The notes beneath the pieces were generated by a model. That model was not told where the DNA came from. It was given only the letters and a program-made list of their open reading frames with translations, and did not search any database. 64,000 nt of DNA, from assembly GCA_951406725.2 (NCBI GenBank), contig OX597816.1, positions 117,924,001 to 117,988,000 of the forward strand. Direction: 5' to 3'. A program made the position numbers and the translations under genes. Below are positions 14,359 to 62,270 of this stretch, in pieces; position 1 is the stretch's first letter; every line of letters begins with the position of its first letter. Origin of the DNA: Octopus vulgaris (lineage: Eukaryota).

Positions 14359-15521
14359 CAGGCTCAACACAAAGCCAAATATTTAGTGGCCGAGGGATTA
14401 ACTAAGGGGAATTATCGATCAAAATGAACTCAATACCTGATTAGTACTTGATGTTGATTTTATTTCCGCCAGAAGGCTGTAAGAAACGAATCTATCTCGG
14501 TATGATTTGAACTCAGAACGTAAAAAAACCTGTAGTAACTTAATTCTTCATGACATAACTTTCCCAAACTCTTTAACGATTATGCCAATCCCAGGCTCTT
14601 TTGTTGATAATAGCAACAATGACGATACAAAACAATAAAGCAAAATACAGAAAATACTTTTAAAAAAAGAAACACCGACGAAAACACAAAATGCCGAAAG
14701 GAAATTGAGAAATATGTGAGGATTCTTCATCGTGCGAGAACCAAAATTGTTTTAAACAAGGAATAAAACGACATACTCTCGTACGTGACTGACACACATG
14801 AATACGTATACGAATGCATGTCTAATGTTTGTCTACCTGCTATATACCTTCTAGATACAAATTTCAGCCAAGGACGACTTTGCCTTTAATTTCTTTTGGG
14901 GATGATAAAATAAGTAGCGGTTCAGCACTTGGGTCGATTTAATTGATTATTCTCTCCCACTAAAATTTCTGGCCTTGTGCCAAAATTTGAAGCCCTTATA
15001 TTTCATATTTCCTTCAGTTAAATGATGAGACCGAAGAAGGTTGAGTTACAATGTTTTCTCCAATATGTGTATGTGAGAGTGTGAGTGTATAAGTGTGTGT
15101 GTATGGGGGAAATGTTTTGCCTTAAGCATAAAGTGCAAAAGCTACTTGTAGATATTGTAAGCTCTTCTAAATTCAGCGCAATATCGGAAACCCTTCACTG
15201 TCATCAGCATATGTATGTTTGTGTGTGTGTATAATCTCGGCTGTAGAGCGATGCTGCGATCACGGCAAAATATAACTACTTAGAGGTTCAATATGAACAG
15301 GGATAGAATTTCCTTACTTCTGTTTTATAGAATATATCAATGAAAATAAAGAACCTGTGATATCTAACACGTGAAACAAAAACAAATAATCTCATGAGCA
15401 GAAGGAACGCATTTTCCAAAAATACACACAGACATGTATAAATAGACGTACGCACATGCACAGACAAAATTTTAGCTGAAGCAGTAGTGTTATACTCCGG
15501 AATTTCTGCAATGTTTACCGC

Positions 15522-15522
<1 letters not shown>

Positions 15523-15606
<84 letters not shown>
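15523..15606. repeat. (AAT)n microsatellite abutting R4/Dong fragment
   Basis: Pure AAT run. Confidence 0.95.
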
Positions 15607-15609
<3 letters not shown>

Positions 15610-16345
15610 GAAACCATTGATCATATTGTCTCCAAGTGCAGTCTTCTTGCGCCTACAGAGTATCACAACAGGCATGATAGGGCTGCACAATATATTCGCT
15701 GGGTAATTTGCAAAAGCCTGGACTTGCCCCATAATAAAAACTGGTGGGATCACAAACCACCTCCAGTGCTTGAAAATGATCCCATGTCACTTCTCTGGAA
15801 CTTCACCATTCAAACTGACAGAAAGATAGATGCGAATAGGCCGGACATCATATTGAAAGACTTCAGACAAAAATCATGCCTCCTCATTGATATGACTGTC
15901 CCAATCGGTATAAACGTATCTGTCAAGACCTACCAAAAACTGAGCAAATATAAAGATCTTCAAATAGAAATTAGCAAAATGTGGAACCTGAAGACTAAAA
16001 TAATACCTGTTGTCATAGGGTCTCTGGGAATGATAGCAAAAGGGGCTGATTGCTACCTAGCTCAGATACCAGGAAACCCCAAAATGGCAGAAATTCAAAA
16101 GATAGAGCTCATGGGGGAACTGCTTATATCCTACGCAAAATACTTTCTATGCAATCTCAAGTTTTAAAATAAACATAGTTTTCTTATGGTTTCTTAAGCA
16201 TTCACTAGTACAACACTAAGTACAAAACTAAATATATGGCACCCTAGGTATAACACCAACATGAACGTCTAACTTGTTGTCTCTTGAGGTCTCTGGGTGA
16301 AACTTGGAGCCAACTTGTACAAATGTAAAGCAAAAGTCAAACATA
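15607..16345 (+). mobile_element. R4/Dong-clade LINE 3' end (CCHC knuckle end + restriction-like endonuclease + 3' UTR)
   Basis: ETIDHIVSKC...EYHNRHD...WNFTIQTDRKIDANRPDII...IDMTVP...KYKDLQIEISKMW...PVVIGSLG; both ends abut (AAT)n. Confidence 0.9.
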
Positions 16346-19439: not shown

Positions 19440-20926
19440 GTAGAAAATGCTAAAATAATTTTATCATGAAATACATTTTGTAATGGTTAGTACCGGTTTC
19501 TGTCTTTTCGACTTTTTCAACTAAGAGTAAAACAAAGGTGGATATTAATTAAGAAGAAAAACAATTATGTTGAAGAAAATTAAATGAACTGTTTTGTAAA
19601 TATTTCCATAGTCTTCAAATAGGTAGGACATTTTCCTTTTTTCTGTCTGTCTCTCACTCACTCTCTCTCTTTCTCCCTCTCTCTTTCTCTCTCTTCTCTT
19701 TTTCTTTTGTGAAGGTTCGTACGGTAAGTAGTAGCAGATCTGAAAAATTGTGTTTATGGGTGCAAAGATATATTTGGTTCTGAAGTTTTATGGTTTAAGC
19801 AGCAACAGCCGAAGAAGGAGAGGGTGAAGGAAGAGGAGGGGAAAAGAAGAAGAAGAAGAAGAAGAAGAAGAAGAAGAACAACAACAACAACAACAACAAC
19901 GGCGACGACAACAACAACATCAACAACAATAACAACGAGGAGGAGGAGGAGGAAAAGAAGAGGAAGAAGGAGAAGAAAAGTAAGAAGAAAGGAAAAATAC
20001 GGGAGTGGTATTACCCAGTAGTAAGGGCTGTTCGTGTAATCTGCTTTAATGGTCAAGTGGCCTCACGGTGACCTGTTGTGGTTGTAGTAGCAGTAGCAGT
20101 TGGGTCTATTCTAAATAAACTCGTGGGTAGCGACTCTTCTAAAAATATCTTCCGTTTTTAATATTTCCATGGGCATTGTTCCAAGATCCTTGTAGTAGTG
20201 TTTATCTGTGGTGGATGCATTAAAAAAAAATTATAATTCTTTGCTAATGTGCTAATTATAGGTTGCATTGTCCCTAAATTTATAGGGGCGGGGAAATTCT
20301 AAAGTTGGATTGTTCAAAAGTGACGCAAATGTTGATGTGTTCACTTAATGCTATTTTACTGTATTCCTGTATTTTAATCTGAGATCTATGTGCGGTCATA
20401 CTCTGGCGTAGACTGTTTTTAGTATGACCAATGTATTGCTCTCGACACCCTGAGCAAGATAACACGTATATCAGGTTTTCCGAAGCACATGTGAAGTTGT
20501 GTTTCACTGTAAAACGTTGACCCTGTTTGAAGGAGAACTCCGATCCCTGAATTAGGTTGACGCATAGGTCTTCCGCATTTTTTACTGTCGGTATCGATGT
20601 TGTTAATGAGTGTACTTGGGCTTGTGTTAGAATACTTTTCATTGACTTGGGCTGCTTCGGATCTGCTACTATCTGCCTACCTTGTGAACCTTCACAAAAG
20701 AAAAGCAGAGAGACACACACAAAAAAGGAAAATGTCCCACCCATTTGAAGACTATGGAAATATTTACAAAACATTTCGTTTAATTTTTTTTCTCGAATTT
20801 AATTGTTCTTCTCCTTAATTAATATCCACCTTTGATTTACTCTTAGTTGAAAAGGTCGAAAAGTCGAAACCGGTACTAACTATTACAAAATGTATTTCAT
20901 GATAAAATTATTTTAGCATTTTCTAC
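19440..20926 (-). mobile_element. Penelope-like element fragment: GIY-YIG endonuclease flanked by inverted pLTRs (19440-19744 and 20657-20926)
   Basis: ORF 20280-20774(-) contains FTVKHNFTCASENLIYVLSCSGCREQYIGHTKNSLRQSMTAHRSQI, the PLE GIY-YIG signature; about 270-300-bp inverted arms seen directly. Confidence 0.9.
20843..20879 (+). ncRNA. Hammerhead-like motif with U3-A8 core (mirror copy 19487-19524 on minus strand)
   Basis: TTAG-TTGAAAA-GGTC-GAAAA-GTC-GAA-ACCGGT-A-CTAA; the two-copy consensus gives stem II GGTC/GACC. Confidence 0.5.
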
Positions 20927-29925: not shown

Positions 29926-30662
29926 TATAATAATAATAATGAAATTATTGTATACATTGCTCAGGTGCACCACAACTTGTCAAAAGTGCGTATAAAGCAT
30001 ATGCAGTAATGTACAAATGTCTAGAAAGGGAACAGTGTATGAGTCAGATACATGTTTGCGTGTTTATGGAGGGGAGAAAATCAGGTATAGTGTTGGCGAA
30101 TCTCAGGAAGCATGGAAGTTTTGAAGGATGCAGTGCTCCGACAACTAACAGCTGATGCCGGCAGTTTGTTCCATGCTTCAGCAAATCTTAGCGTGAAAAA
30201 ATGTTTCGGAAAGTCATGGGAGCTGTGCTGTTTTCTGACTTTGTAAACATGTCCACGGGTGTTGGACAGATGGAGTTTGAAAAGGTGCACAGAGTTATTG
30301 TTTGTAAGATGGTTAACAATTTTATGGGTGTCTGCCAAGTCAGCTGCCAGACGTCGGAGTTTCAATGTATCCATGCCCAGGGAAGTAAGGCGTTCAGAAT
30401 ACGGCAAATGCCTGATGGATAGTATTCTCTTGGTTGCACGTCGCTGAACGGCTTCCAGACGATTAATATCATGAGCAAGATAGGGGTTCCAGACCGGTGA
30501 TGCAAATTCCCGGTGAAGTCGCACCATAGCTATATTAAGCCGCAGATAGATAGCTGGAGAGCAGCTCACAAAGGACTTGGTGAATGATACCAAGACACCC
30601 TCAATCTTCTTGGCAATTTTAGCAATGTGTTTTGTCCAACGCAAATCGCTGTTGACAATAAT
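29926..30662 (-). mobile_element. CR1-clade LINE 3' end
   Basis: ORF 30081-30644: EFASPVWNPYLAHDINRLEAVQRRATKRI...YSERLTSLG...LRRLAADL...RGH...FFTLR...WNKLP; (TTA)n-type tail at 29926-29940. Confidence 0.9.
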
Positions 30663-31120
30663 GCAGCTTCCAGTTCAAAAGTCTTTCGTAATGATTTCCA
30701 ATAAATCACAACATTACTTATTAAATCAAACAGCCTTATTTTTACTAGTTGCCCAATTGATCTGTCTCCTTACACATGGAAAACTGAACGTTTCTCTGAC
30801 AAGACCTTCACAAATATGGTAACAGCGCAGGTATAGTGACTGCCGAAAACGTTTACCAAAATTATATACACAGAAGATTTCTGGTTGAAGTTGTCTTCTT
30901 TTATATCATTTGATGCTTACATATGTTTTAGCAATTATTATATATTTATTCATTTGTTACCCTACTTCATTTATTTATTTTTTCATGATTAATCATTCAT
31001 TATCACCTACAACAATATCTGCTCCCGAGCAAAGCAAGGGCAGAAACTGACATGCGTGTATATGCGTGTCTATAAGCATATACACATATAGGCTGCAGGT
31101 GCGCGTTTCCTACGCATACA

Positions 31121-31560: not shown

Positions 31561-33190
31561 AAGATTATGTATGTATGTATGTATGTATGTATGTATGTAT
31601 GTATGTATGGATGGATGGATGGATGGATGGATGGAAGGATGGATGGATGGATGGATGTGTGCGTGTGTGTGTAAATAGACATAGTATTTTGTTGAAGCTG
31701 AAAATTTTCACAAACAGTTATTCAGTTTCACATCATCAGTTACCGGAAAATCTGAGTAACAGTTTGTAAATGTTTCCAGCTTCAGTAAGGCCCCACGTTT
31801 TACTCTACTTTGGTATTCGAGGGCTAAAATCTTCTCCTTGTTTCGCACATGTTTGCTCCTATGTATGTACACACACACACACACACACACACATGTTGAA
31901 GCACCCCATAGTTTATATTCATTTATATTTTTGCTTTTATCGGCTTCGACAGGGGAGGACAGGACCCATCCATCACAGTTTACAGTGTTTGCGATAGTGG
32001 TGGAAATTAGAAAGTTATCTTCGGACCAGAAACCTATCCTAAACGTTGGTATTAGAGTGAAATCCGCTAAACGTACCTCACAGCCAGGTAAAGTACTTCA
32101 GTTAAGCCTTGTAGAGTATCGGCAGGTGATGGGACTGAAATATTCGGTGCAACTTTAGCGTACGGTCTACTCGGCCATTTACACCTCAGCGTACGACCTA
32201 CCAGCACAGTGTGTAGTCTACCACAGCTACAAGAACTTTATACTGCAGGATGACAAAAAAATAGTTGAATAATGTTGAATAATGATTTATAATTAATGAC
32301 ATAAACTTAATCATACAAATCATAATCCTCAAAATGCTAAATAATATATTTAAAAAAGGTAGGCACAAGTGATAAATTCACACCATGGAAGATCACAAAA
32401 CCAGCTGTGATCTCAGTGGAGAGATCACGTCATTTCAGTGTAAACTTCGGATACTGAGGAAGACTGCACGCTTAAGTAGCACCATTTGTGGCCTTAATTT
32501 AAAATAAGGATGTACTTTCGCCATTTGACAGTGATTAATTTGGATCGATTGTGCGAATGCTCATCATGTTTAGAGATAGTGTAGGACAGTGATAGTGGTG
32601 GTTTCTTAATAATAGGGGTGCTTGAGATATTCTTTCTTTCTATCTTTCTTTTCTTTTCTGTTGTTAAAAAAGACAAGAATGGAATAGCCCGACTAGGTGA
32701 CGCATTCAAAATAAACGTGTACAGAATCAATCCATGCTTGATGTGTTGTGCCTCGGTTGCATGTGGGAAAAGACATTGTTAAGAAGGAATTAAAGAGTAT
32801 TGTTGGATATGGCTCAACTAGATCAGTGTGATATATAGAAGGAACAGAATGGGAAACAGGACTGGACTCTGGGAACACCAAAGTTTACTGAAAGATGGAG
32901 AGAAAGAGCTCAGTCAAATACATGCCCCAATGCGTGTCCGTGTATGTGTATATGTATGGTGTACGTTCGTGTACGCATGTATGTGCACTTTGGAATATGT
33001 CAGCGTCTATGGTTAGCTGAAATGTATCAATATTAACAAATGTCTTATACTCAAACCTTCACGCGGCCTGTTGCATCTATGAAGCTTATACTGTCCCCAC
33101 CTCAACATATATATATATATATATATTGATAGAAATGGTAAGACAACAAAAGAATGGGAAAGACCTCGATATTATGTAAATAGAGGAACT

Positions 33191-34022: not shown

Positions 34023-35000
34023 CTTATTATATACTTATTCCTTATTATATATTGATTATTCATTTTTATACTTTTTGTGATCTAGTAAAATGTTTTATAA
34101 AAATATATTTTATTTTTTATTTATGATTTGGTTTATGTCTATCATTGCTTGAACTGCATAATAGTGGCTTTTTCTCTAATTTATATATATATATATATAT
34201 GTATGTTTGTATGTATGTATGTATGTATGTATGTATGTATATAACATGCGTGTGTATATATGTGTGTGCTTGGGTGTGTGTGTGCAGTATTGGTTCGTCC
34301 ATCGTTGTCGACGATGACCAAGGATATCGCATGGGAGAAGAAAACAGGACATGGTATATCCGGCTTTGACTAGTCATTCCGATGCGGGCTCGGAAGTTTC
34401 GATCACTGGTGGTCTGCTGGGAATGATGGCAAGGCTCTAGACTTGCACAGTTCGCGTATTTTTCATTGTGGTCCCATATATATATATATATACATGTGCA
34501 CATACGCACGTATGCGTGCGTGGTGGTGGTGTAGGGCGTCCCTTGTTCGATGTTGACCAAGCATCTGCAGGCCTGGGCAAGCTTTTCTCAACGCCACCAA
34601 CGTTTCTGCAGGGAAAAGTCTACCATCTTGGGCCCATACAGCTTTTAATAACGTTGCCTGTCGACGCAGTCAGAAAGAAAAGAGACCGAGCAGGTACCAA
34701 ACCTCAAACACATCCGCTAATCCACTGCCCTCGATCAGGACATTCTTTTTTTATTAAATTTTCTTTTTCTTTTGCGATCCCGAAAGGGTGAAAAGAAATA
34801 TTGACCAAGGAGGCACCTAAACTCAGAACACAGAGAGTGCAGCGAGGCACCCGTACATGCATGGGAGCGCGCATGTATGTATGTATGTGTATGTGTGTGC
34901 GCGTGTGAGTGTGTCTCTGTGTGTGTGTGTACAGTATAACCATGAAAACAGCAGAAAGATTGGATATTTTATCCTTATAAGACAGAAAAAGTTGTCAGCA

Positions 35001-35070
35001 AACAGCCACGGGACTTGAACCCGCACCCTTCAGTTACCGGGTGAGTACTCTACCATTAAGCTAAACGGCC
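35001..35070 (-). pseudogene. tRNA-Thr(GGT)-like sequence, probably a SINE head or tRNA pseudogene
   Basis: GGCCGTT-TA-GCTT-AATGGTA-GAGT-A-CTCAC-CCGGTAA-CTGAA-GGGT-GCGGG-TTCAAGT-CCCGT-GGCTGTT. T arm and A/B boxes are good; anticodon stem pairs 3 of 5 and the acceptor stem is mostly G-U. Confidence 0.65.
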
Positions 35071-35075
35071 CGCTG

Positions 35076-35217
<142 letters not shown>

Positions 35218-35280
35218 CAGACAGACAGCTAGACGGAGACACTGAGAGAGAGAAAGAGAGAGAGATTGACAGACTCAGAT

Positions 35281-35742
<462 letters not shown>

Positions 35743-36060
35743 CTGTCAACGCTTCTTTGGTCCATTTATTTGTTTCAGCCAGCACGTCTAACAGATTGCT
35801 GATGCACCATCTGGCTCTCGACCCGCCAGCATTTTTTTTGTTTTTGTTTTGTTCTCTCTCCTAAGAATTTAAGCAGAATAGTGACGGCATCACTTAAGGA
35901 GATAGCATGAGACAAAAAATATTTTTCTGAATCAGGAAACCTAGTCAAAATACAAGGAACTAATAAATAAATCCTGCTACATTTATTCAACACTGATTCT
36001 TTGGTGTGTACGTGTATGTAAATGTGCAGGTGAGTGCGTTTGTGCTTGTGTGTGTATACG

Positions 36061-36877: not shown

Positions 36878-37190
36878 GATCGATCGATCTGTCTGTCTGT
36901 CTGTGCATGTGTGTACAGATGTATATATGTATACCTCAGTGTGTGTGTATGTGTGTATTTGGATTTGTATCCCTCGCCACTAGATATCTGATCTTGATTT
37001 ATTTATGTCACCGTAAGCTAGCGGTTTGACATAAGTGACCGATAAAATAAGTGACCAGAGTTAATAAGAAGTACCAAATTTGAAAACAAAATACTGACGT
37101 CGATTTGTTTAATAAAACACCTTTCAAAGCGGTGCACCAGCACAACTGCAGTCCAATGACTAGAACAATTAAAAGAAATGAAAGAATAGA
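36663..37190 (+). mobile_element. SINE family B, diverged, with internal (TATC)n
   Basis: Head, body and tail recognisable. Confidence 0.7.
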
Positions 37191-38913: not shown

Positions 38914-39710
38914 TATAAGGGTGGGCAAAAGTAGGTATACAGTTACTTAATATGACTGGAATGCAGGGTAGCAAGCTAGTAGAATCGTTAGAACGCCGGG
39001 CAAAATACTTCGCGGAATTCCGTCCGTCTTTACGTTCTGAGTTCAAAATTCCACCGAGGTCGACTTAGCCATTCATCGTTTCGGAGTCGATGAAATAAGT
39101 ACCAGTTGAATATCGGGGTCGATGTAACCTCAGCCGAAATTACTGGCCTTGTGCCAGAATTTGAAAATAATATGAGAGGGATGTTCTTTATTTCTGTTTT
39201 TTAGAATAAGAATTCTATGATTCTATGTTGTTTTTTTTTTTGTTACAAATTCTTTCTCTAATAAAATATTTATTCCTAATTTCATATATTCATTACAGGG
39301 CTGGGAATTTGATCAAGGATGAACGAAAACAGATCATCAAGCAGTACTGGAAAACAAGGAAGGCAGAAATGATTAGATATAAATGGACTGAAGAATTTCA
39401 AAGACAATCTCTGACAAGATTAATAGTTTACAGAATACTTGACAAATTTGAGCAGACTGGGTCCATTTGCGATGAACAGAAAAGTGGTCGACCGTTCGGT
39501 ATTACCACTGAAAAAAATGAAATGCTTTTAGTCAAGCATTCAGTCAATGTCCCCAGAAAAAAAAGGTGGGGCTTCCAAATGAACTGGGTATCTTCTGCAG
39601 ATCCCTTTGTCGACTTATGAATAACTCAAGTTTTAAAAAAAGAAATAAATGTTATGAACATCTCTCTCATATTAAGGAACTGTATACCTACTTTTGTCCA
39701 CCTCTGTGTA
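38914..39710 (+). mobile_element. Internally deleted Tc1/mariner element with nested SINE (38966-39170)
   Basis: TIRs AGGGTGGGCAAAAGTAGGTATACAGTT / AACTGTATACCTACTTTTGTCCACCT; N-terminal HTH remnant DERKQIIKQYWKT...TRLIVYRILDKFEQTGSICDEQKSGRP. Confidence 0.8.
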
Positions 39711-39910: not shown

Positions 39911-40165
39911 TCATCATTTTGTATAAGCACCAAGAAATTTGATAAGAGTTAATTTATAATTATTGTATGTATGTCATTTTCCTGGTATTATTCGTGGTGG
40001 CTAAAGTTTACTTCCAAAGTATGTATGGAAAATGGAAAATCAAACCGTTTATCAGAACAGTTGTAATAATAGACAGATTTTAATATAGATGTATGTATAT
40101 GTGTGTGTGTGAGCGTGCGTATGTATGTTTGTATGAATGTATGTATGAAAATTGGAGAATCCAAC

Positions 40166-40771
40166 TTACTTGTCAGTGTGATGTAAAGTGTTTCTTAAAC
40201 GAGCTGATCTATCATTGAAGTCATTGACGTCGATCGGCAGTACTCCAGATAGGTTGTTGTTGTTGTTGTTGCTGTCGTTCTTATATCTTTTATACTGTTT
40301 CTGCAATAAGTTCTGAAGACGGCTGCCTTCCTTCTGACTTCTTGTGTTGCTGTTGGGGATGCGGATATCACCTGGTAGAAGTTGATCATTGGAGTTCATC
40401 TGTTCTGAGATGGCCCTTCTGAAGAGGGCCTCATCCCTCACTGGATATAACATCTGGTTTCCTGTAGTCGCGTCGTTGTCATCGTAATCGTTTTGCTGTG
40501 CACTCTGTCTTTGTATAGGCAAAGACCCGGATAGGTTTTCAAAATAACTTTGAAACGGATTGTAATTATCGTCTGTGTTAATGGTGCCGAATTCTTGTCG
40601 CTTGTATTGCCCGTCCGATCTTTTGCCAGCGAAGTGGAATGCATTGCAACGACATAAATTGCCCCCTCTACCAACGGCACAACGAGTCTTACAGAATGTC
40701 TTCACGTCAAAAGACTGTACAAATACCACAAAACACATGGCTACAATGAAGAATACTCCTTGTCGACACAT
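40166..40771 (-). CDS. Secreted neuropeptide precursor (HFAamide-like), 201 aa; C-terminal end may be spliced
   Basis: Hydrophobic signal peptide MCRQGVFFIVAMCFVVFVQS, followed directly by FDVKTFCKTRCAVGRGGNLCRCNAFHFA-G-KR (amidation plus dibasic site; Cys spacing C-x3-C-x8-C-x-C). Further KR/RR sites follow; A at -3; non-repetitive, stop-free 606 nt. The family name comes from memory of the annelid/mollusc HFAamide precursors, not from a search. Confidence 0.9.
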   Translation of the reverse strand: MCRQGVFFIVAMCFVVFVQSFDVKTFCKTRCAVGRGGNLCRCNAFHFAGKRSDGQYKRQEFGTINTDDNYNPFQSYFENLSGSLPIQRQSAQQNDYDDNDATTGNQMLYPVRDEALFRRAISEQMNSNDQLLPGDIRIPNSNTRSQKEGSRLQNLLQKQYKRYKNDSNNNNNNLSGVLPIDVNDFNDRSARLRNTLHHTDK

Positions 40772-41040
40772 TTTTGATTTTTCAACACTTTATTATTTGA
40801 AAAATCCCTTTAACTATTGTTCCTGTTGCTTCTACTGCTGTTGCTGTTGTTGCGGCTACAGCTGCTTCTGGAGTATTTTCAATTGCAGTTGTTGCTGTTA
40901 TTGTTGTTGTTGTTGTTGCTTCCCTTGTAGCCCGTCTGTCACTTGCGGTTCTCTCTCTCTCTCTCTCTTTTCTTGGGAAGTAAGGTTGCGTCCGCTTTCT
41001 GTGTTTTTCTTCTTTTTATATCCTGTAGAAAGACAATTTG
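40772..41040 (-). other. 5' UTR part of the coding exon and its splice acceptor (exon starts 41022)
   Basis: Minus strand ...CAAATTGTCTTTCTACAG|GATAT with AG at 41024-41023 and an upstream U-rich tract; UTR rich in CAA/CAG repeats. Confidence 0.6.
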
Positions 41041-41161
41041 ATGAAATAATATAAATTTAAAATAAAATTAATATACACATCAATGCATTACAAAAGAAAA
41101 TATTGTTCTCTTTCAATTTCACTTTCCTTGCACTCTTTCTATGTTTCTCCTCCCACCCGCT

Positions 41162-41197
<36 letters not shown>

Positions 41198-41756
41198 TCT
41201 TTCTCTCTTACTTTCTATGTTCATTGAGATCAAATGTAATGACTGAACTTTTCTAATACTTTACTGTTCTTGTTTTCATTATCGTTTATACTATTTTCTA
41301 ATATATTTCTGTCTGTCCTACTTAGGCAACTGAAATACAATTTCAAATATATACATGTACACCCCGACAAATGCACACATACACAAGCGTTGACAGACAC
41401 AGGTACATTCATACACATGTGTGAGTATATGTATGCTTGCACGCACAAGTAATGTATATTTATATATTTTTATATACTTATGTATGTATGTATGTATGTA
41501 TATATGCGTGTATGTATGTATGTGTATATGTATGTGTGTATGCACGTATTTAGTCTATGTGTGTATGTATGTGTGTATGCACGTATGTGAATGTAGTTAT
41601 TATATGTATGTATAAAGTAAATGAACATGAATATAAATGAAGTCACAACTGACTACATTTCCTGCTTCTCTTCTAACCAGTTTTTCTGTCTGTTTCTGTC
41701 TGCCTGTCTGTCTGTCTGCCTGTCTGCCTGTCTGCCTGTCTGTCTGTCTTTCCCAG

Positions 41757-41794
<38 letters not shown>

Positions 41795-41922
41795 TCTTTT
41801 TTTTCCAACTCTATTCTATCTTGCATGATTTTTTGTTTTTACAAAACTAGTCACCTCTCTCAGTCTGAATAGTTGAAGTCCCTAATTTCAAAATAAAATA
41901 AATACTTAATTTTTCTGTTTAC

Positions 41923-42174
41923 TTTTGTTGGTGCTGTTGTTGCTGCTACTGTTTTTGTTGAAGACTGTTGTTGCTAATTGTCTTCTTCTTCTTCTTCTTC
42001 TTCTTGCTATTATTTTGCAATTAAATATCGTCGTTAGCGTGCGGCTTCAAATTCAATTTTTAACACCGTTCCAAAGATATTTTGATGTTCTCTACACCCT
42101 CAAAATGATGTCCTCTCACTCTTTGCAAAATTGTCGTTTCCAGTAGATTGTTTTTTTGTTTTTGTTTTTTTATA
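41923..42174 (-). promoter_or_regulatory. Candidate TATA box (42174-42168) and non-coding first exon (about 42145-41923)
   Basis: TATAAAA on the minus strand; CAA/CAG/GAA-rich tract like the exon-2 UTR; donor AAA|GTAAAC at 41922. An alternative start further upstream (about 42490) cannot be excluded. Confidence 0.3.
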
Positions 42175-42300
42175 TCGTAACACTTTGTCGCTTTTCTTGT
42201 AAAGTAGTATTATAATTATTTTAAAATACTTATTGCATGTATATCTGTTATACTATGTAATACAACTGTGTTTTCTAGAATAGTTTGGTTTATTGCTTCG

Positions 42301-42387
42301 TTCTTCTTCTTCTTCTTCTTCTTCTTCTTCTTCTTCTTCTTCTTCTTCTTCTTCTTCTTCTTCTTCTTCTTCTTCTTCTTCTTCTTC
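42301..42387. repeat. (TTC)29 microsatellite
   Basis: Pure run. Confidence 0.95.
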
Positions 42388-42457
42388 TTTTCTTTCTTCT
42401 TTAGGTTAACGACACTGATGATGCCGTTTTTAATTGTTTTTTTCCTTCACCCATTCA

Positions 42458-42470
42458 CCAGCAGATGGCG
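42458..42470 (+). promoter_or_regulatory. CTCF-core-like motif containing an E-box (CCAGCAGATGGCG)
   Basis: Matches CCASYAGRKGGCR at all 13 positions; contains CAGATG. Confidence 0.4.
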
Positions 42471-42905
42471 AACGTTTTCAGAAAATCTGACTAGATGCCG
42501 TTGAAGCGCTTGAATAAATACTCAAGGAAGTGTGTTGGCGTGAGAATAGTGTCGACATTAGAATTCTGCCTTTGCGCCAGAATTCGCTAAACTTTTCTTC
42601 AGAAACCATGTGACTTACTTAATTCAATGGGCGTGTCACAGAACTGCCTGCATCTAGCGTACGGCATATACTTTTCTACTTACGATTGTTTACGTATATA
42701 TCCAGACACACACACACAAACAGACACACACATACATACACACACAGAGATTACACGCAAACATACATACACTCATGTATATATATATACATTCATATAT
42801 ATATATACATTCATATATACGTACATACATGTGTGGGTGGGTGTGTATACCTACATAGACACACGTATACATACACAAATACACATATATTAACATTTAT
42901 GTGTG

Positions 42906-57850: not shown

Positions 57851-59077
57851 CACAAACATGCAGGAAATAAATAGACACCTTTAATTTTCAATATCTTTTA
57901 TTTAATATGGGAAGCGAACAATTGAAATGTAATCGATAGGTAGGACTACTTACTTTAGTGTTTAGTTGACATTCCCTTTGCGGATTTTAATTCAGAAACT
58001 CTTTTTGGTATTGAACTGATGAGCTTTGTGATAGTCTCTTGTGGAATTTCTGCCCATTTTTCACGCAACAATCGAAACAATTCATCTTTAGATATGGGTT
58101 TCTGTTGAGTTTTTTTGTATAGCTCTATCTAGTATGCTCCAAAGATTTTCAATTGCGTTCATGTCAGGAGATTGGATTGGCCAAGGAAGCTTTTTGATCC
58201 CATTTTCAGTCAGCCATTCCCTTTCGCTGTGTGGCACGGAGCCCTATCTTCCATGAATAAAAACTCATTTTTCGTTATGTTATAGTGTGAATACATCGAA
58301 AGTAGTCCTTGCTTAAGTTTTTCAATGTATTTTTCAGAGTTTTTAGTTCCAATACATTCGATCAGCTCAGAACGACCAATGCTGGTGACAGCTCCCCATA
58401 CCATTACAGAGATACCGCTATGTTTCACGGTTGGAGTCGTTTCAAATCAAATTCTTGATTGGGAAGCCTCCAAACCCAAACACGTCCAATGTCTGAAAAT
58501 AATGCAAATCTGGATTCATCTGAGAAAATCATTCTATCCCAAAATGAACTGGATTTTTATGACATCTCCTTAGCCCATTTCATTCTTTTCATGATATTAA
58601 TTGGTTGAAGGAGAGGTTTTCTTCTAGCTGCTCGTCCATAATATCCAAGCTTATTCAGATATGTAACATACATTCTTGGATTAACTTCTAGCTGTTTTGC
58701 AATGTCAGAAGCCTTCGAACGAGGTTTGTTTTCCACAATTCTCTTCAAACAGCGAAGCTTCTTTTCTTAGGGCCCAGGTCGGCCGGGATGAGAATCTGTT
58801 GATTCTTTTCCTTGGCTTTTAAATTGCACTATAATTCTATTAACAGTAGCAAGAGGAATTTGAAGATTTTCGGCAATTTTTCGCTTTGAAAATCTGACAA
58901 TTCTGCTGAATTTTTTGTGCGTGGCATGGTTACTTGTTACAAATGTTTAATATAATGGCACCTGGAATGAAAAAGAATAATTACATTGTAAATTCTACAC
59001 CGCTGAAAACATATGAAGACGCTTAGATCAGAAATGTTGAAAATTAGAGGTGTCTATTTACTTCCTGCATGTCTGTG
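57851..59077 (-). mobile_element. Near-complete Tc1 transposon with TA target duplications; transposase pseudogene 58927-57962
   Basis: About 45-bp TIRs (CACAAACATGCAGGAAATAAATAGACACC...); TA at 57849-57850 and 59078-59079; MPRTK...GRP...RRKPLL...VMVWGAV...FMEDRAPCH...WPIQSPDMNAIENLW...KGMSTK* with stops and frameshifts. Confidence 0.92.
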
Positions 59078-61333: not shown

Positions 61334-62270
61334 TCGTTTACTGGTCACAAGGGCTTACATAAAATTACATTAAGAGACACACAACAACATAAAAGACAAA
61401 AATATGACAATACAATGGGTTTTACAACGTGTAAACACTATAATAACAATTAAAATTAAACAATTTAAAACTCCCAATAGGGGAGGCGCATTAAGGACCT
61501 CGTGAAAAAACCCACAAAAGTCACGGGTGCCTGAACAACAGGACAAGAACCCTTCTCCTTTTGTTTATAGGTATACGCTCAGAATTGATCCTTTCACACT
61601 GGTCATTCTCCCAAAATTCACCCACCTTTCAACAAACATGCTGCAAGGCAACACTCAACTTCCTTTTCAAGTGAAACTTGAAAACGTTTATGAGAGCTTG
61701 GCCAAAGAGGAAAGTGCCTGACTTGAGCCCTTTCAAACGTGTCCACCATACTACTCTTTTCGCTACAGCCACTAGACAAATAAAAATTGCCTTCCTCTCC
61801 CGGCCAAAAGAGGACGGCGGGGCAATCTTCTCAGTGGATTCAGCTGATAGCCGGATTCGTCCCACGCGCGACAGCAGGTATTCGACATAAACCCACAGGT
61901 CAGCAATACTCGGGCACTGGACTAAGGTGTGCAGAATGGTTTCATCGTTCTGAGCACACCTCGGACAGGCCCGGCTGACGGCACATTCCATGCTTGTAAA
62001 GTTTATCTCGAACAGGCAGCGCCTCTCGGTAGCACTGCCAGACAAGGTATTTCTGGAAGTTGTCCATAGGCCCAAACTCGAAAGTTCTCCAAAACAGACC
62101 GGTTAGTTGATCTTCATCGACGCCCAGAGTTTCCCCGAGAACGTCGTCGCACTTTCCCTCCACTAGCCCTCTATAGAACGCTAGAGTAGAACTACCACCG
62201 ACCGCATTGCCTGCCTGGCGGAGGTTTGTGAGCGCTTAACGGCACTCGAGGTGTCAAGCACCCCTCCTCG
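61306..62270 (-). mobile_element. Tx1/L1-clade LINE 3' end (zf-RVT region)
   Basis: DNFQKYLVWQCYREALPVRDKLYKHG/CPRCAQNDETILHTLVQCP; 3' UTR and (TAA)n tail. Confidence 0.85.

Follow-up and report, generated by a model that had tools for sequence, protein, structure and literature searches.

A probable HFAamide neuropeptide gene in Octopus vulgaris

HFAamide precursors and the octopus gene

The HFAamide (HFAa) precursors are a family of lophotrochozoan proneuropeptides. Its first known members came from Platynereis and molluscs (Conzelmann et al. 2013, PMC3890597), those of nemerteans, brachiopods and phoronids were added afterwards (Thiel et al. 2021, PMC8557429), and the family is also represented in the oyster (PMC8398477) and in Conus (PMC13542836). 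The present work concerns a gene in a stretch of 64,000 nucleotides from Octopus vulgaris (assembly GCA_951406725.2, contig OX597816.1, positions 117,924,001 to 117,988,000 of the forward strand). This whole stretch is called the window below, and positions are counted from its first letter. The gene contains an open reading frame (ORF) of 201 codons on the minus strand, translated to 201 residues, and is very probably the octopus orthologue of the HFAamide gene, giving an amidated signalling peptide with two disulfide bonds. It is an ordinary, well-conserved member of the published family; its naming in octopods is new.

Some information on the expression of these genes is available. In Platynereis, in situ hybridisation gave a signal only in 3-day-old larvae, and the RNA-seq table of development shows larval peaks (Conzelmann et al. 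2013, PMC3890597). The oyster HFAamide transcript is low in the visceral ganglia and is mostly larval and mantle-expressed (PMC8398477), and in Conus the neuropeptide transcripts as a class are reported from the nerve ring, with none in the venom gland (PMC13542836). An earlier note on this DNA, made from the letters alone, stated that it knew of no receptor or function for HFAamide. None was found in the literature searched either, and the Conus paper lists 'Unknown' (PMC13542836).

The octopus protein resembles the Platynereis dumerilii founder in its signal peptide, its single N-terminal peptide followed by GKR, and its long, non-conserved tail. In the mature peptide, 16 of 28 residues are the same, among them the four cysteines, GRGGNLC, CNA and HFA, whereas the first six and the intercysteine residues of the founder are different (FEYNGY/QKM/RW versus FDVKTF/KTR/AV) and the C-terminal precursor regions are unrelated. 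Nemertean, brachiopod and phoronid precursors have the same cysteine framework and the C-terminal HF[A/T]-GKR. However, the phoronid precursors vary in loop length and end in HFT, and the octopus peptide resembles the nemertean and brachiopod form more. Within the molluscs, Cragi-HFAamide of Crassostrea gigas (PMC8398477) and the endogenous HFAamide of Conus (PMC13542836) belong to the same family as the octopus gene, and proteins of the gastropods Babylonia, Haliotis, Patella, Physella and Candidula carry the full motif, Babylonia having two loci whereas each octopod shows one.

Membership of the HFAamide family

A profile hidden Markov model (HMM) was built from 11 published HFAamide precursors (supplement of Thiel et al. 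2021, PMC8557429) and compared with the full set of 1320 open frames in the window that have 30 amino acids or more, as well as with 2000 shuffles of the ORF. For the octopus ORF the score was 54.8 bits (E 2e-15), compared with 11.2 bits for the best shuffle and 8.3 bits for the next-best frame of the window. In a BLASTP comparison with the Platynereis founder, identity was 45% over 49 residues (E 4e-15). An exhaustive HMMER search with the octopod alignment against 1.84 billion representative sequences (E<1e-3) retrieved 117 relatives, nearly all of which align at query positions of about 2-60, and a few reach further into the tail. The family motif, F-x4-[YF]-C-x3-C-x2-G-[RK]-G-G-N-[LV]-C-x-C-[NS]-[AG]-x-H-F-[AV]-G-K-R, is present in 109 of them, and residues C27, C31, G34, G36, G37, C40, C42, F47 and G49 are invariant among the motif-bearing relatives.

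The cysteine framework C-x3-C-x8-C-x-C is invariant in the 110 motif-matched copies and 90-100% conserved in the 118-sequence alignment. For the loop G-[RK]-G-G-N-[LV], which reads GRGGNL in the window, the three glycines (G34, G36, G37) occur in 100% of the 110 copies, R35 in 70%, N38 in 79% and L39 in 86%. The C-terminus, [NS]-[AG]-x-H-F-[A/T/V]-GKR in the family and NAFHFA-GKR in the window, has H in 91%, F in 100%, A in 73%, G in 100% and KR in 98% of these copies. The octopus protein also carries one HFAamide copy, at its N-terminus, ahead of a poorly conserved tail, which is the arrangement typical of the family. Thus, the profile of published members, the match to the founder and the motif in the relatives agree with the proposal of the earlier note that the ORF encodes a four-cysteine precursor of the HFAamide type, and its expectation that the cysteine pattern and HFAG-KR are kept in other cephalopods or molluscs was borne out in Octopus species, in Argonauta and in the five named gastropods.

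In repeat-rich DNA, an ORF may also arise by chance or be derived from a transposable element (TE), and it can be argued that 16% of the window is tandem repeat, that TE fragments are present, and that a Pfam scan of the ORF matched no family model. Nevertheless, this explanation is excluded by the existence of orthologues with a ratio of nonsynonymous to synonymous substitutions (dN/dS) of 0.14 and by the family HMM score given above, while no tandem repeat or intra-window repeat covers the gene region.

All relatives with a name come from molluscs (Babylonia, Candidula, Patella, Haliotis and Physella), and each is listed as 'uncharacterized'. A sequence search of the PDB with the 31-residue peptide plus GKR found no relative, the hit obtained being a chance match (E 0.52) to an Fe-S motif of CO-dehydrogenase. 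HFAGKR is absent from those portions of the mollusc neuropeptide supplements of De Oliveira et al. 2019 that were searched, and a full-text literature search for HFAGKR and for the locus and accession numbers found no papers. Two observations on copy number may be added. The two Babylonia areolata loci (LOC143276694 and LOC143290139) fit the neuropeptide ohnologues discussed for Conus, and two HFAamide copies in one precursor were found in a single family member, a metagenome-derived protein of 211 amino acids, the second copy being preceded by KR.

Octopod orthologues and purifying selection

Residues 1-200 are identical to those of Octopus sinensis LOC118761014 and O. vulgaris CAI9719846.1. 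A word-indexed protein search gave 97% identity of the window ORF to O. bimaculoides LOC106873001, and a hypothetical protein of Argonauta hians is 66-70% identical. The cluster formed at 90% identity includes isoforms X1-X3 of the O. sinensis locus, the O. vulgaris protein and one further Octopus species. All octopod database entries are described as 'uncharacterized' or 'hypothetical', and none carries the HFAamide name. Each octopod annotation seen contains a single HFAamide locus, as does the window. An exact-protein look-up in assemblies with the window ORF and the O. bimaculoides protein returned no record.

The mature peptide is the same in O. sinensis, O. vulgaris, O. bimaculoides and the further Octopus species, and differs in Argonauta by six changes, all of which are conservative. 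Substitution rates were calculated by the Nei-Gojobori method for the window ORF against the Argonauta coding sequence. The dN/dS value of 0.14 applies to the whole precursor, with 0.145 for residues 52-119, 0.13 for residues 120-162, 0.195 for residues 163-201, and 0.165 for residues 52-201 combined. In the mature peptide region dN is 0.12 and the synonymous sites are saturated. The whole precursor is under purifying selection.

These values bear on the possibility that the product is a secreted host-defence or venom-type peptide, i.e. an antimicrobial compound or a salivary-gland toxin that acts directly on microbes or prey. Such a role would suit a small, cationic peptide with four cysteines, as well as the low ganglionic and the larval and mantle expression of the oyster homologue (PMC8398477), and cone snails have indeed recruited HFAamide copies into their venom (PMC13542836). 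The resulting Conus 'doppelganger' peptides are derived from the same neuropeptide family, but they are expressed in the venom gland, carry the 5' untranslated region (UTR) of the conotoxin O2 superfamily and have a diverged toxin region (PMC13542836). In the octopus gene, by contrast, the mature region is conserved, and so is a 5' block of its own. Conservation of the mature peptide across phyla, identity within Octopus, the conservative nature of the changes in Argonauta and purifying selection are the opposite of the rapid divergence of the toxin region described in Conus (PMC13542836). Since there is, moreover, one copy in the window and one locus per octopod annotation seen, and since a cephalopod venom-gland survey that included an HFAamide model as query reported other mimics but none of HFAamide, a defence or venom function is improbable.

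Processing and fold of the predicted peptide

The first 20 residues have the n/h/c organisation of a signal peptide, with an arginine at position 3, a hydrophobic run of 13 residues (VFFIVAMCFVVFV, mean Kyte-Doolittle value 3.3) and V-Q-S at positions -3 to -1, i.e. V-x-S at -3/-1, and the predicted peptide follows directly; in the family, the two either adjoin or are separated by a dibasic site. AlphaFold predicts a helix for residues 4-19 with a pLDDT (predicted local distance difference test) of 88-96. Hydropathy, the V-Q-S sequence and this helix agree with the signal peptide of residues 1-20 in the earlier note, and its placing of the 28-residue peptide at 40711-40628, followed by G-K-R at 40627-40619, is exact. 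In 12 of the 110 relatives, a dibasic pair occurs at the cleavage position predicted for octopus, six residues ahead of the first cysteine. Because these 12 relatives place the pair exactly there, F21 is independently supported as the N-terminus of the mature peptide.

In prohormones, the sequence G-KR is a signal for cleavage by a prohormone convertase and for amidation by PAM. On this basis, the octopus precursor would be matured as follows. The preproprotein of 201 residues would enter the endoplasmic reticulum (ER), where signal peptidase would cut after Ser20 and the four cysteines would form two disulfides, most likely Cys27-Cys40 and Cys31-Cys42. A prohormone convertase would then cut after Lys50-Arg51, carboxypeptidase E would remove the lysine and arginine, and PAM would use Gly49 to leave an amide on Ala48. 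The predicted product, FDVKTFCKTRCAVGRGGNLCRCNAFHFA-NH2, is a cationic peptide of 28 residues with a C-terminal Ala-NH2, two disulfides, a monoisotopic mass of 3115.46 Da and, with five Lys/Arg residues against one Asp, a net charge of about +4 to +5. By homology, it would be released as a neuronal or endocrine signal and act on a receptor.

Cystine-stabilised alpha-helices (CSH) are a structural class, which does not imply homology, in which a CxxxC sequence on a helix is cross-linked to a CxC sequence by two parallel disulfides. In the AlphaFold model, obtained with the 118-sequence alignment, a helix of residues 23-32 (pLDDT about 90) runs over CxxxC, after which the chain turns at the invariant G-x-GG and continues as an extended C-terminal segment that bears CxC. 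The confident part of the model comprises about 30 residues, and the predicted TM score (pTM) for the whole is 0.30. The pairing 27-40 and 31-42 is likely, because the predicted arrangement would resemble that of a cystine-stabilised helix.

The sequence G-R-GG-N-L-C-x-C-N-A-x-H-F-A is nearly invariant across phyla, as would suit a ligand that is locked to a conserved receptor, and by homology a neuronal or hormonal role may be envisaged in cephalopods. Two points weigh against this assignment. The oyster homologue is weakly expressed in the visceral ganglia (PMC8398477), so that the role need not be strictly neuronal, and the Logan contigs that bear the gene are genomic DNA and provide no expression support.

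The C-terminal part of the precursor

The region behind the mature peptide was described in the earlier note as acidic and Asn-rich spacers that are cut at KR and RR. The dibasic sites, KR57-58, RR118-119 and KR161-162, are all kept in Argonauta, in agreement with this description. The so-called spacers do not evolve freely, however; they are constrained too, because dN/dS is 0.165 for residues 52-201. Within this part of the protein, a stretch of 19 residues, QKEGSRLQNLLQKQYKRY, is identical in Octopus and Argonauta, as is every dibasic site. AlphaFold predicts helices at residues 114-126, 146-169 (pLDDT about 80; blocks 84 and 78) and 183-196.

Such conservation raises the question whether the precursor is a multi-product prohormone, of which the conserved C-terminal segments, especially the KR-flanked AISEQ...SRLQNLLQKQY of 41 residues and the LSGVLPIDVNDFNDRSARLRN region, would be released as additional, cephalopod-specific bioactive peptides, HFAamide being one product among several. 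The dN/dS values of 0.13-0.20 across residues 120-201 are as low as in the rest of the precursor, the QKEGSRLQNLLQKQYKRY stretch and the dibasic sites are retained as mentioned, the helix at 146-169 is predicted with a pLDDT of about 80, and a distant relative retains the motifs LL-K-Y-RRY and RL. On the other hand, the C-terminal region cannot be aligned outside the closest relatives and contains no Gly-dibasic amidation signals, and it might equally well be conserved for sorting or as a chaperone in the folding of the N-terminal peptide. Additional peptides are compatible with the data but seem rather unlikely. The same doubtful standing applies to the more specific proposal that residues 120-160, which are strongly conserved, KR-flanked and predicted to be helical and end in QKEGSRLQNLLQKQY, and/or residues 163-200 are bioactive, and that the stop codon located within a splice donor (see below) regulates the choice of the C-terminal tail. 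If true, peptides of this kind or regulation of the tail would add new signalling molecules to an orphan system.

Structure of the gene

The earlier note equated the gene with the ORF at 40166-40771. The ORF is real, but the gene is not confined to it and exceeds these 606 bp. At the 3' end, the stop codon TAA (40168-40166) overlaps a GTAAGT splice donor (Table 1). If the transcript is left unspliced, the protein ends with ...TDK*, whereas the spliced reading continues into downstream exons. The spliced models of O. sinensis, O. bimaculoides and O. vulgaris all diverge right after ...HHTD, with tails N-HWTAVV..., N-IKFL, N-Y and K-AGRR. Two of the corresponding exons were located in the window by exact matches, and a search of the window for the exon of the AGRR* tail, which is present in the O. 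vulgaris and O. bimaculoides X2 models, did not find it. The HFAamide peptide would be unaffected by the alternative tails, because these are short, lack conservation and lie beyond the last dibasic site. Logan contigs from a further Octopus species were considered as transcripts and rejected; they are collinear with the genome across both the acceptor and the donor, and hence genomic.

At the 5' end, comparison with Argonauta suggests that a promoter, a non-coding first exon (exon 1, about 42640-42451) and a first intron of 1.43 kb are probably present. The block at 42678-42451 precedes the ATG by about 1.7-1.9 kb and occurs once in the window; it is 73% identical to Argonauta (E 5e-27), where its counterpart lies 5.4 kb upstream of the ATG. 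The exon 1 block includes 28 nucleotides that Argonauta shares without a change (GACACGCCCATTGAATTAAGTAAGTCAC, 42637-42610). An E-box-like CAC(A/G)TG comes next, and the block ends in a conserved donor, GAATGG/GTGAAG in Octopus and /GTAAGT in Argonauta (the slash marks the splice site). The putative acceptor, ttctacAG/GA at 41023/41022, is preceded by a polypyrimidine tract and is common to Argonauta and a second Octopus species. The sequence TATAAAAAG at about 41018 was considered as a TATA box and rejected in favour of this 3' splice acceptor, because the polypyrimidine-CAG/GA sequence is kept in Argonauta and TATAAAAAG is not, and because a conserved donor lies upstream. With the predicted exon 1 included, the gene would extend at least from about 42.64 to 32.23 kb in the window.

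The final codons of the predicted exon 1 (GAATGG/) contain an upstream ATG at 42452-42454 on the minus strand, which is kept in Argonauta. The upstream ORF that starts from it has 42 codons in Octopus and 3 in Argonauta; only the ATG is conserved, not the peptide.

Table 1 Features of the HFAamide gene and its surroundings in the window
Position	Strand	Feature	Basis or remark
42641-42678	-	Putative core promoter with TATA-like element (TAGAAAAG in Octopus, TATAAAAG in Argonauta)	Alignment with Argonauta locus
42451-42640	-	Putative non-coding exon 1 (5'UTR), start approximate	Conservation with Argonauta
41023-42450	-	Putative intron 1, about 1.43 kb; GT 42450-42449, AG 41024-41023	Acceptor conservation
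40772-41022	-	5'UTR part of main exon, 251 nt, CAA/CAG-rich	About 75% identity to Argonauta upstream sequence
40166-40771	-	ORF, 201 codons	
40712-40771	-	Start codon and signal peptide, residues 1-20 (MCRQGVFFIVAMCFVVFVQS)	Predicted cleavage between S20 and F21
40628-40711	-	Predicted mature HFAamide peptide, residues 21-48, FDVKTFCKTRCAVGRGGNLCRCNAFHFA, with Cys27, Cys31, Cys40 and Cys42	Profile, motif and pairwise matches
40619-40627	-	Gly49-Lys50-Arg51, putative amidation donor and dibasic convertase site	Amidation predicted from established prohormone processing
40286-40618	-	Precursor-related region, residues 52-162: SDGQY, KR, 59-residue acidic/Asn-rich peptide, RR, 41-residue AISEQ...QKQY, KR	Dibasic sites as in Argonauta
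40170-40285	-	C-terminal precursor segment, residues 163-200 and first two bases of codon 201, to exon end	Alignment, dN/dS
40164-40169	-	GTAAGT 5' splice donor overlapping TAA stop	CAAGTAAGTT conserved in Argonauta
37018-37159	-	Alternative 3' coding exon, tail N-HWTAVVLVHRFERCF...SNR* (O. sinensis isoform X1)	Exact peptide match; acceptor ttctag/
32227-32242	-	Alternative 3' coding exon, tail N-IKFL* (O. sinensis isoform X2)	Exact match; acceptor tcctgcag/
39225-39620	+	DUF4817 helix-turn-helix ORF, E 4e-5	Transposase-type fragment inside 3' intron of the gene, about 550 bp downstream of coding exon
61629-62075	-	zf-RVT domain, E 6e-6	Retrotransposon/transposon remnant
20283-20798	-	Weak GIY-YIG match, E 0.04	Retrotransposon/transposon remnant
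30084-30674	-	Reverse-transcriptase-tail-like or DDE-transposase-like frame	No significant Pfam match
15487-16167	+	Reverse-transcriptase-tail-like or DDE-transposase-like frame	No significant Pfam match
58213-58446	-	Reverse-transcriptase-tail-like or DDE-transposase-like frame	No significant Pfam match
35000-35070	-	tRNA match (Rfam), 34 bits, gathering threshold 29	Adjoins long (TCTA/TATC)-type microsatellite

Surroundings of the gene

The window has a G+C content of 35.7%. Its load of microsatellites is very high, with 174 arrays in Tandem Repeats Finder (TRF) that make up 16% of it, and a further share of the sequence is repeated within the window. Most long ORFs are translations of microsatellites, including one of 251 amino acids at 35030-35785, and the others are fragments of TEs (Table 1). 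In the Argonauta annotation, the 10 kb on each side of the gene contain no further gene, and the Argonauta matches in the window beyond the exon and the upstream block are multi-copy repeats. It is plausible, as the earlier note held, that this is the only host gene in 64 kb. The tRNA match at 35000-35070, where ARAGORN detected no tRNA, is probably a tRNA-derived short interspersed nuclear element (SINE) or a pseudogene.

Significance for HFAamide signalling

No concept is changed by these results, since the family, the precursor architecture and the orphan status of HFAamide were already published. What is gained is a name and a precise predicted product, with its sequence, mass, amidation and likely disulfides, for a gene that is listed as uncharacterized in all four octopod annotations. 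One of the spiralian neuropeptides under the tightest sequence constraint has thus been retained in cephalopods; it is an orphan in every phylum. With its brain atlases and its large repertoire of G-protein-coupled receptors (GPCRs), the octopus is a reasonable system for the deorphanisation of HFAamide.

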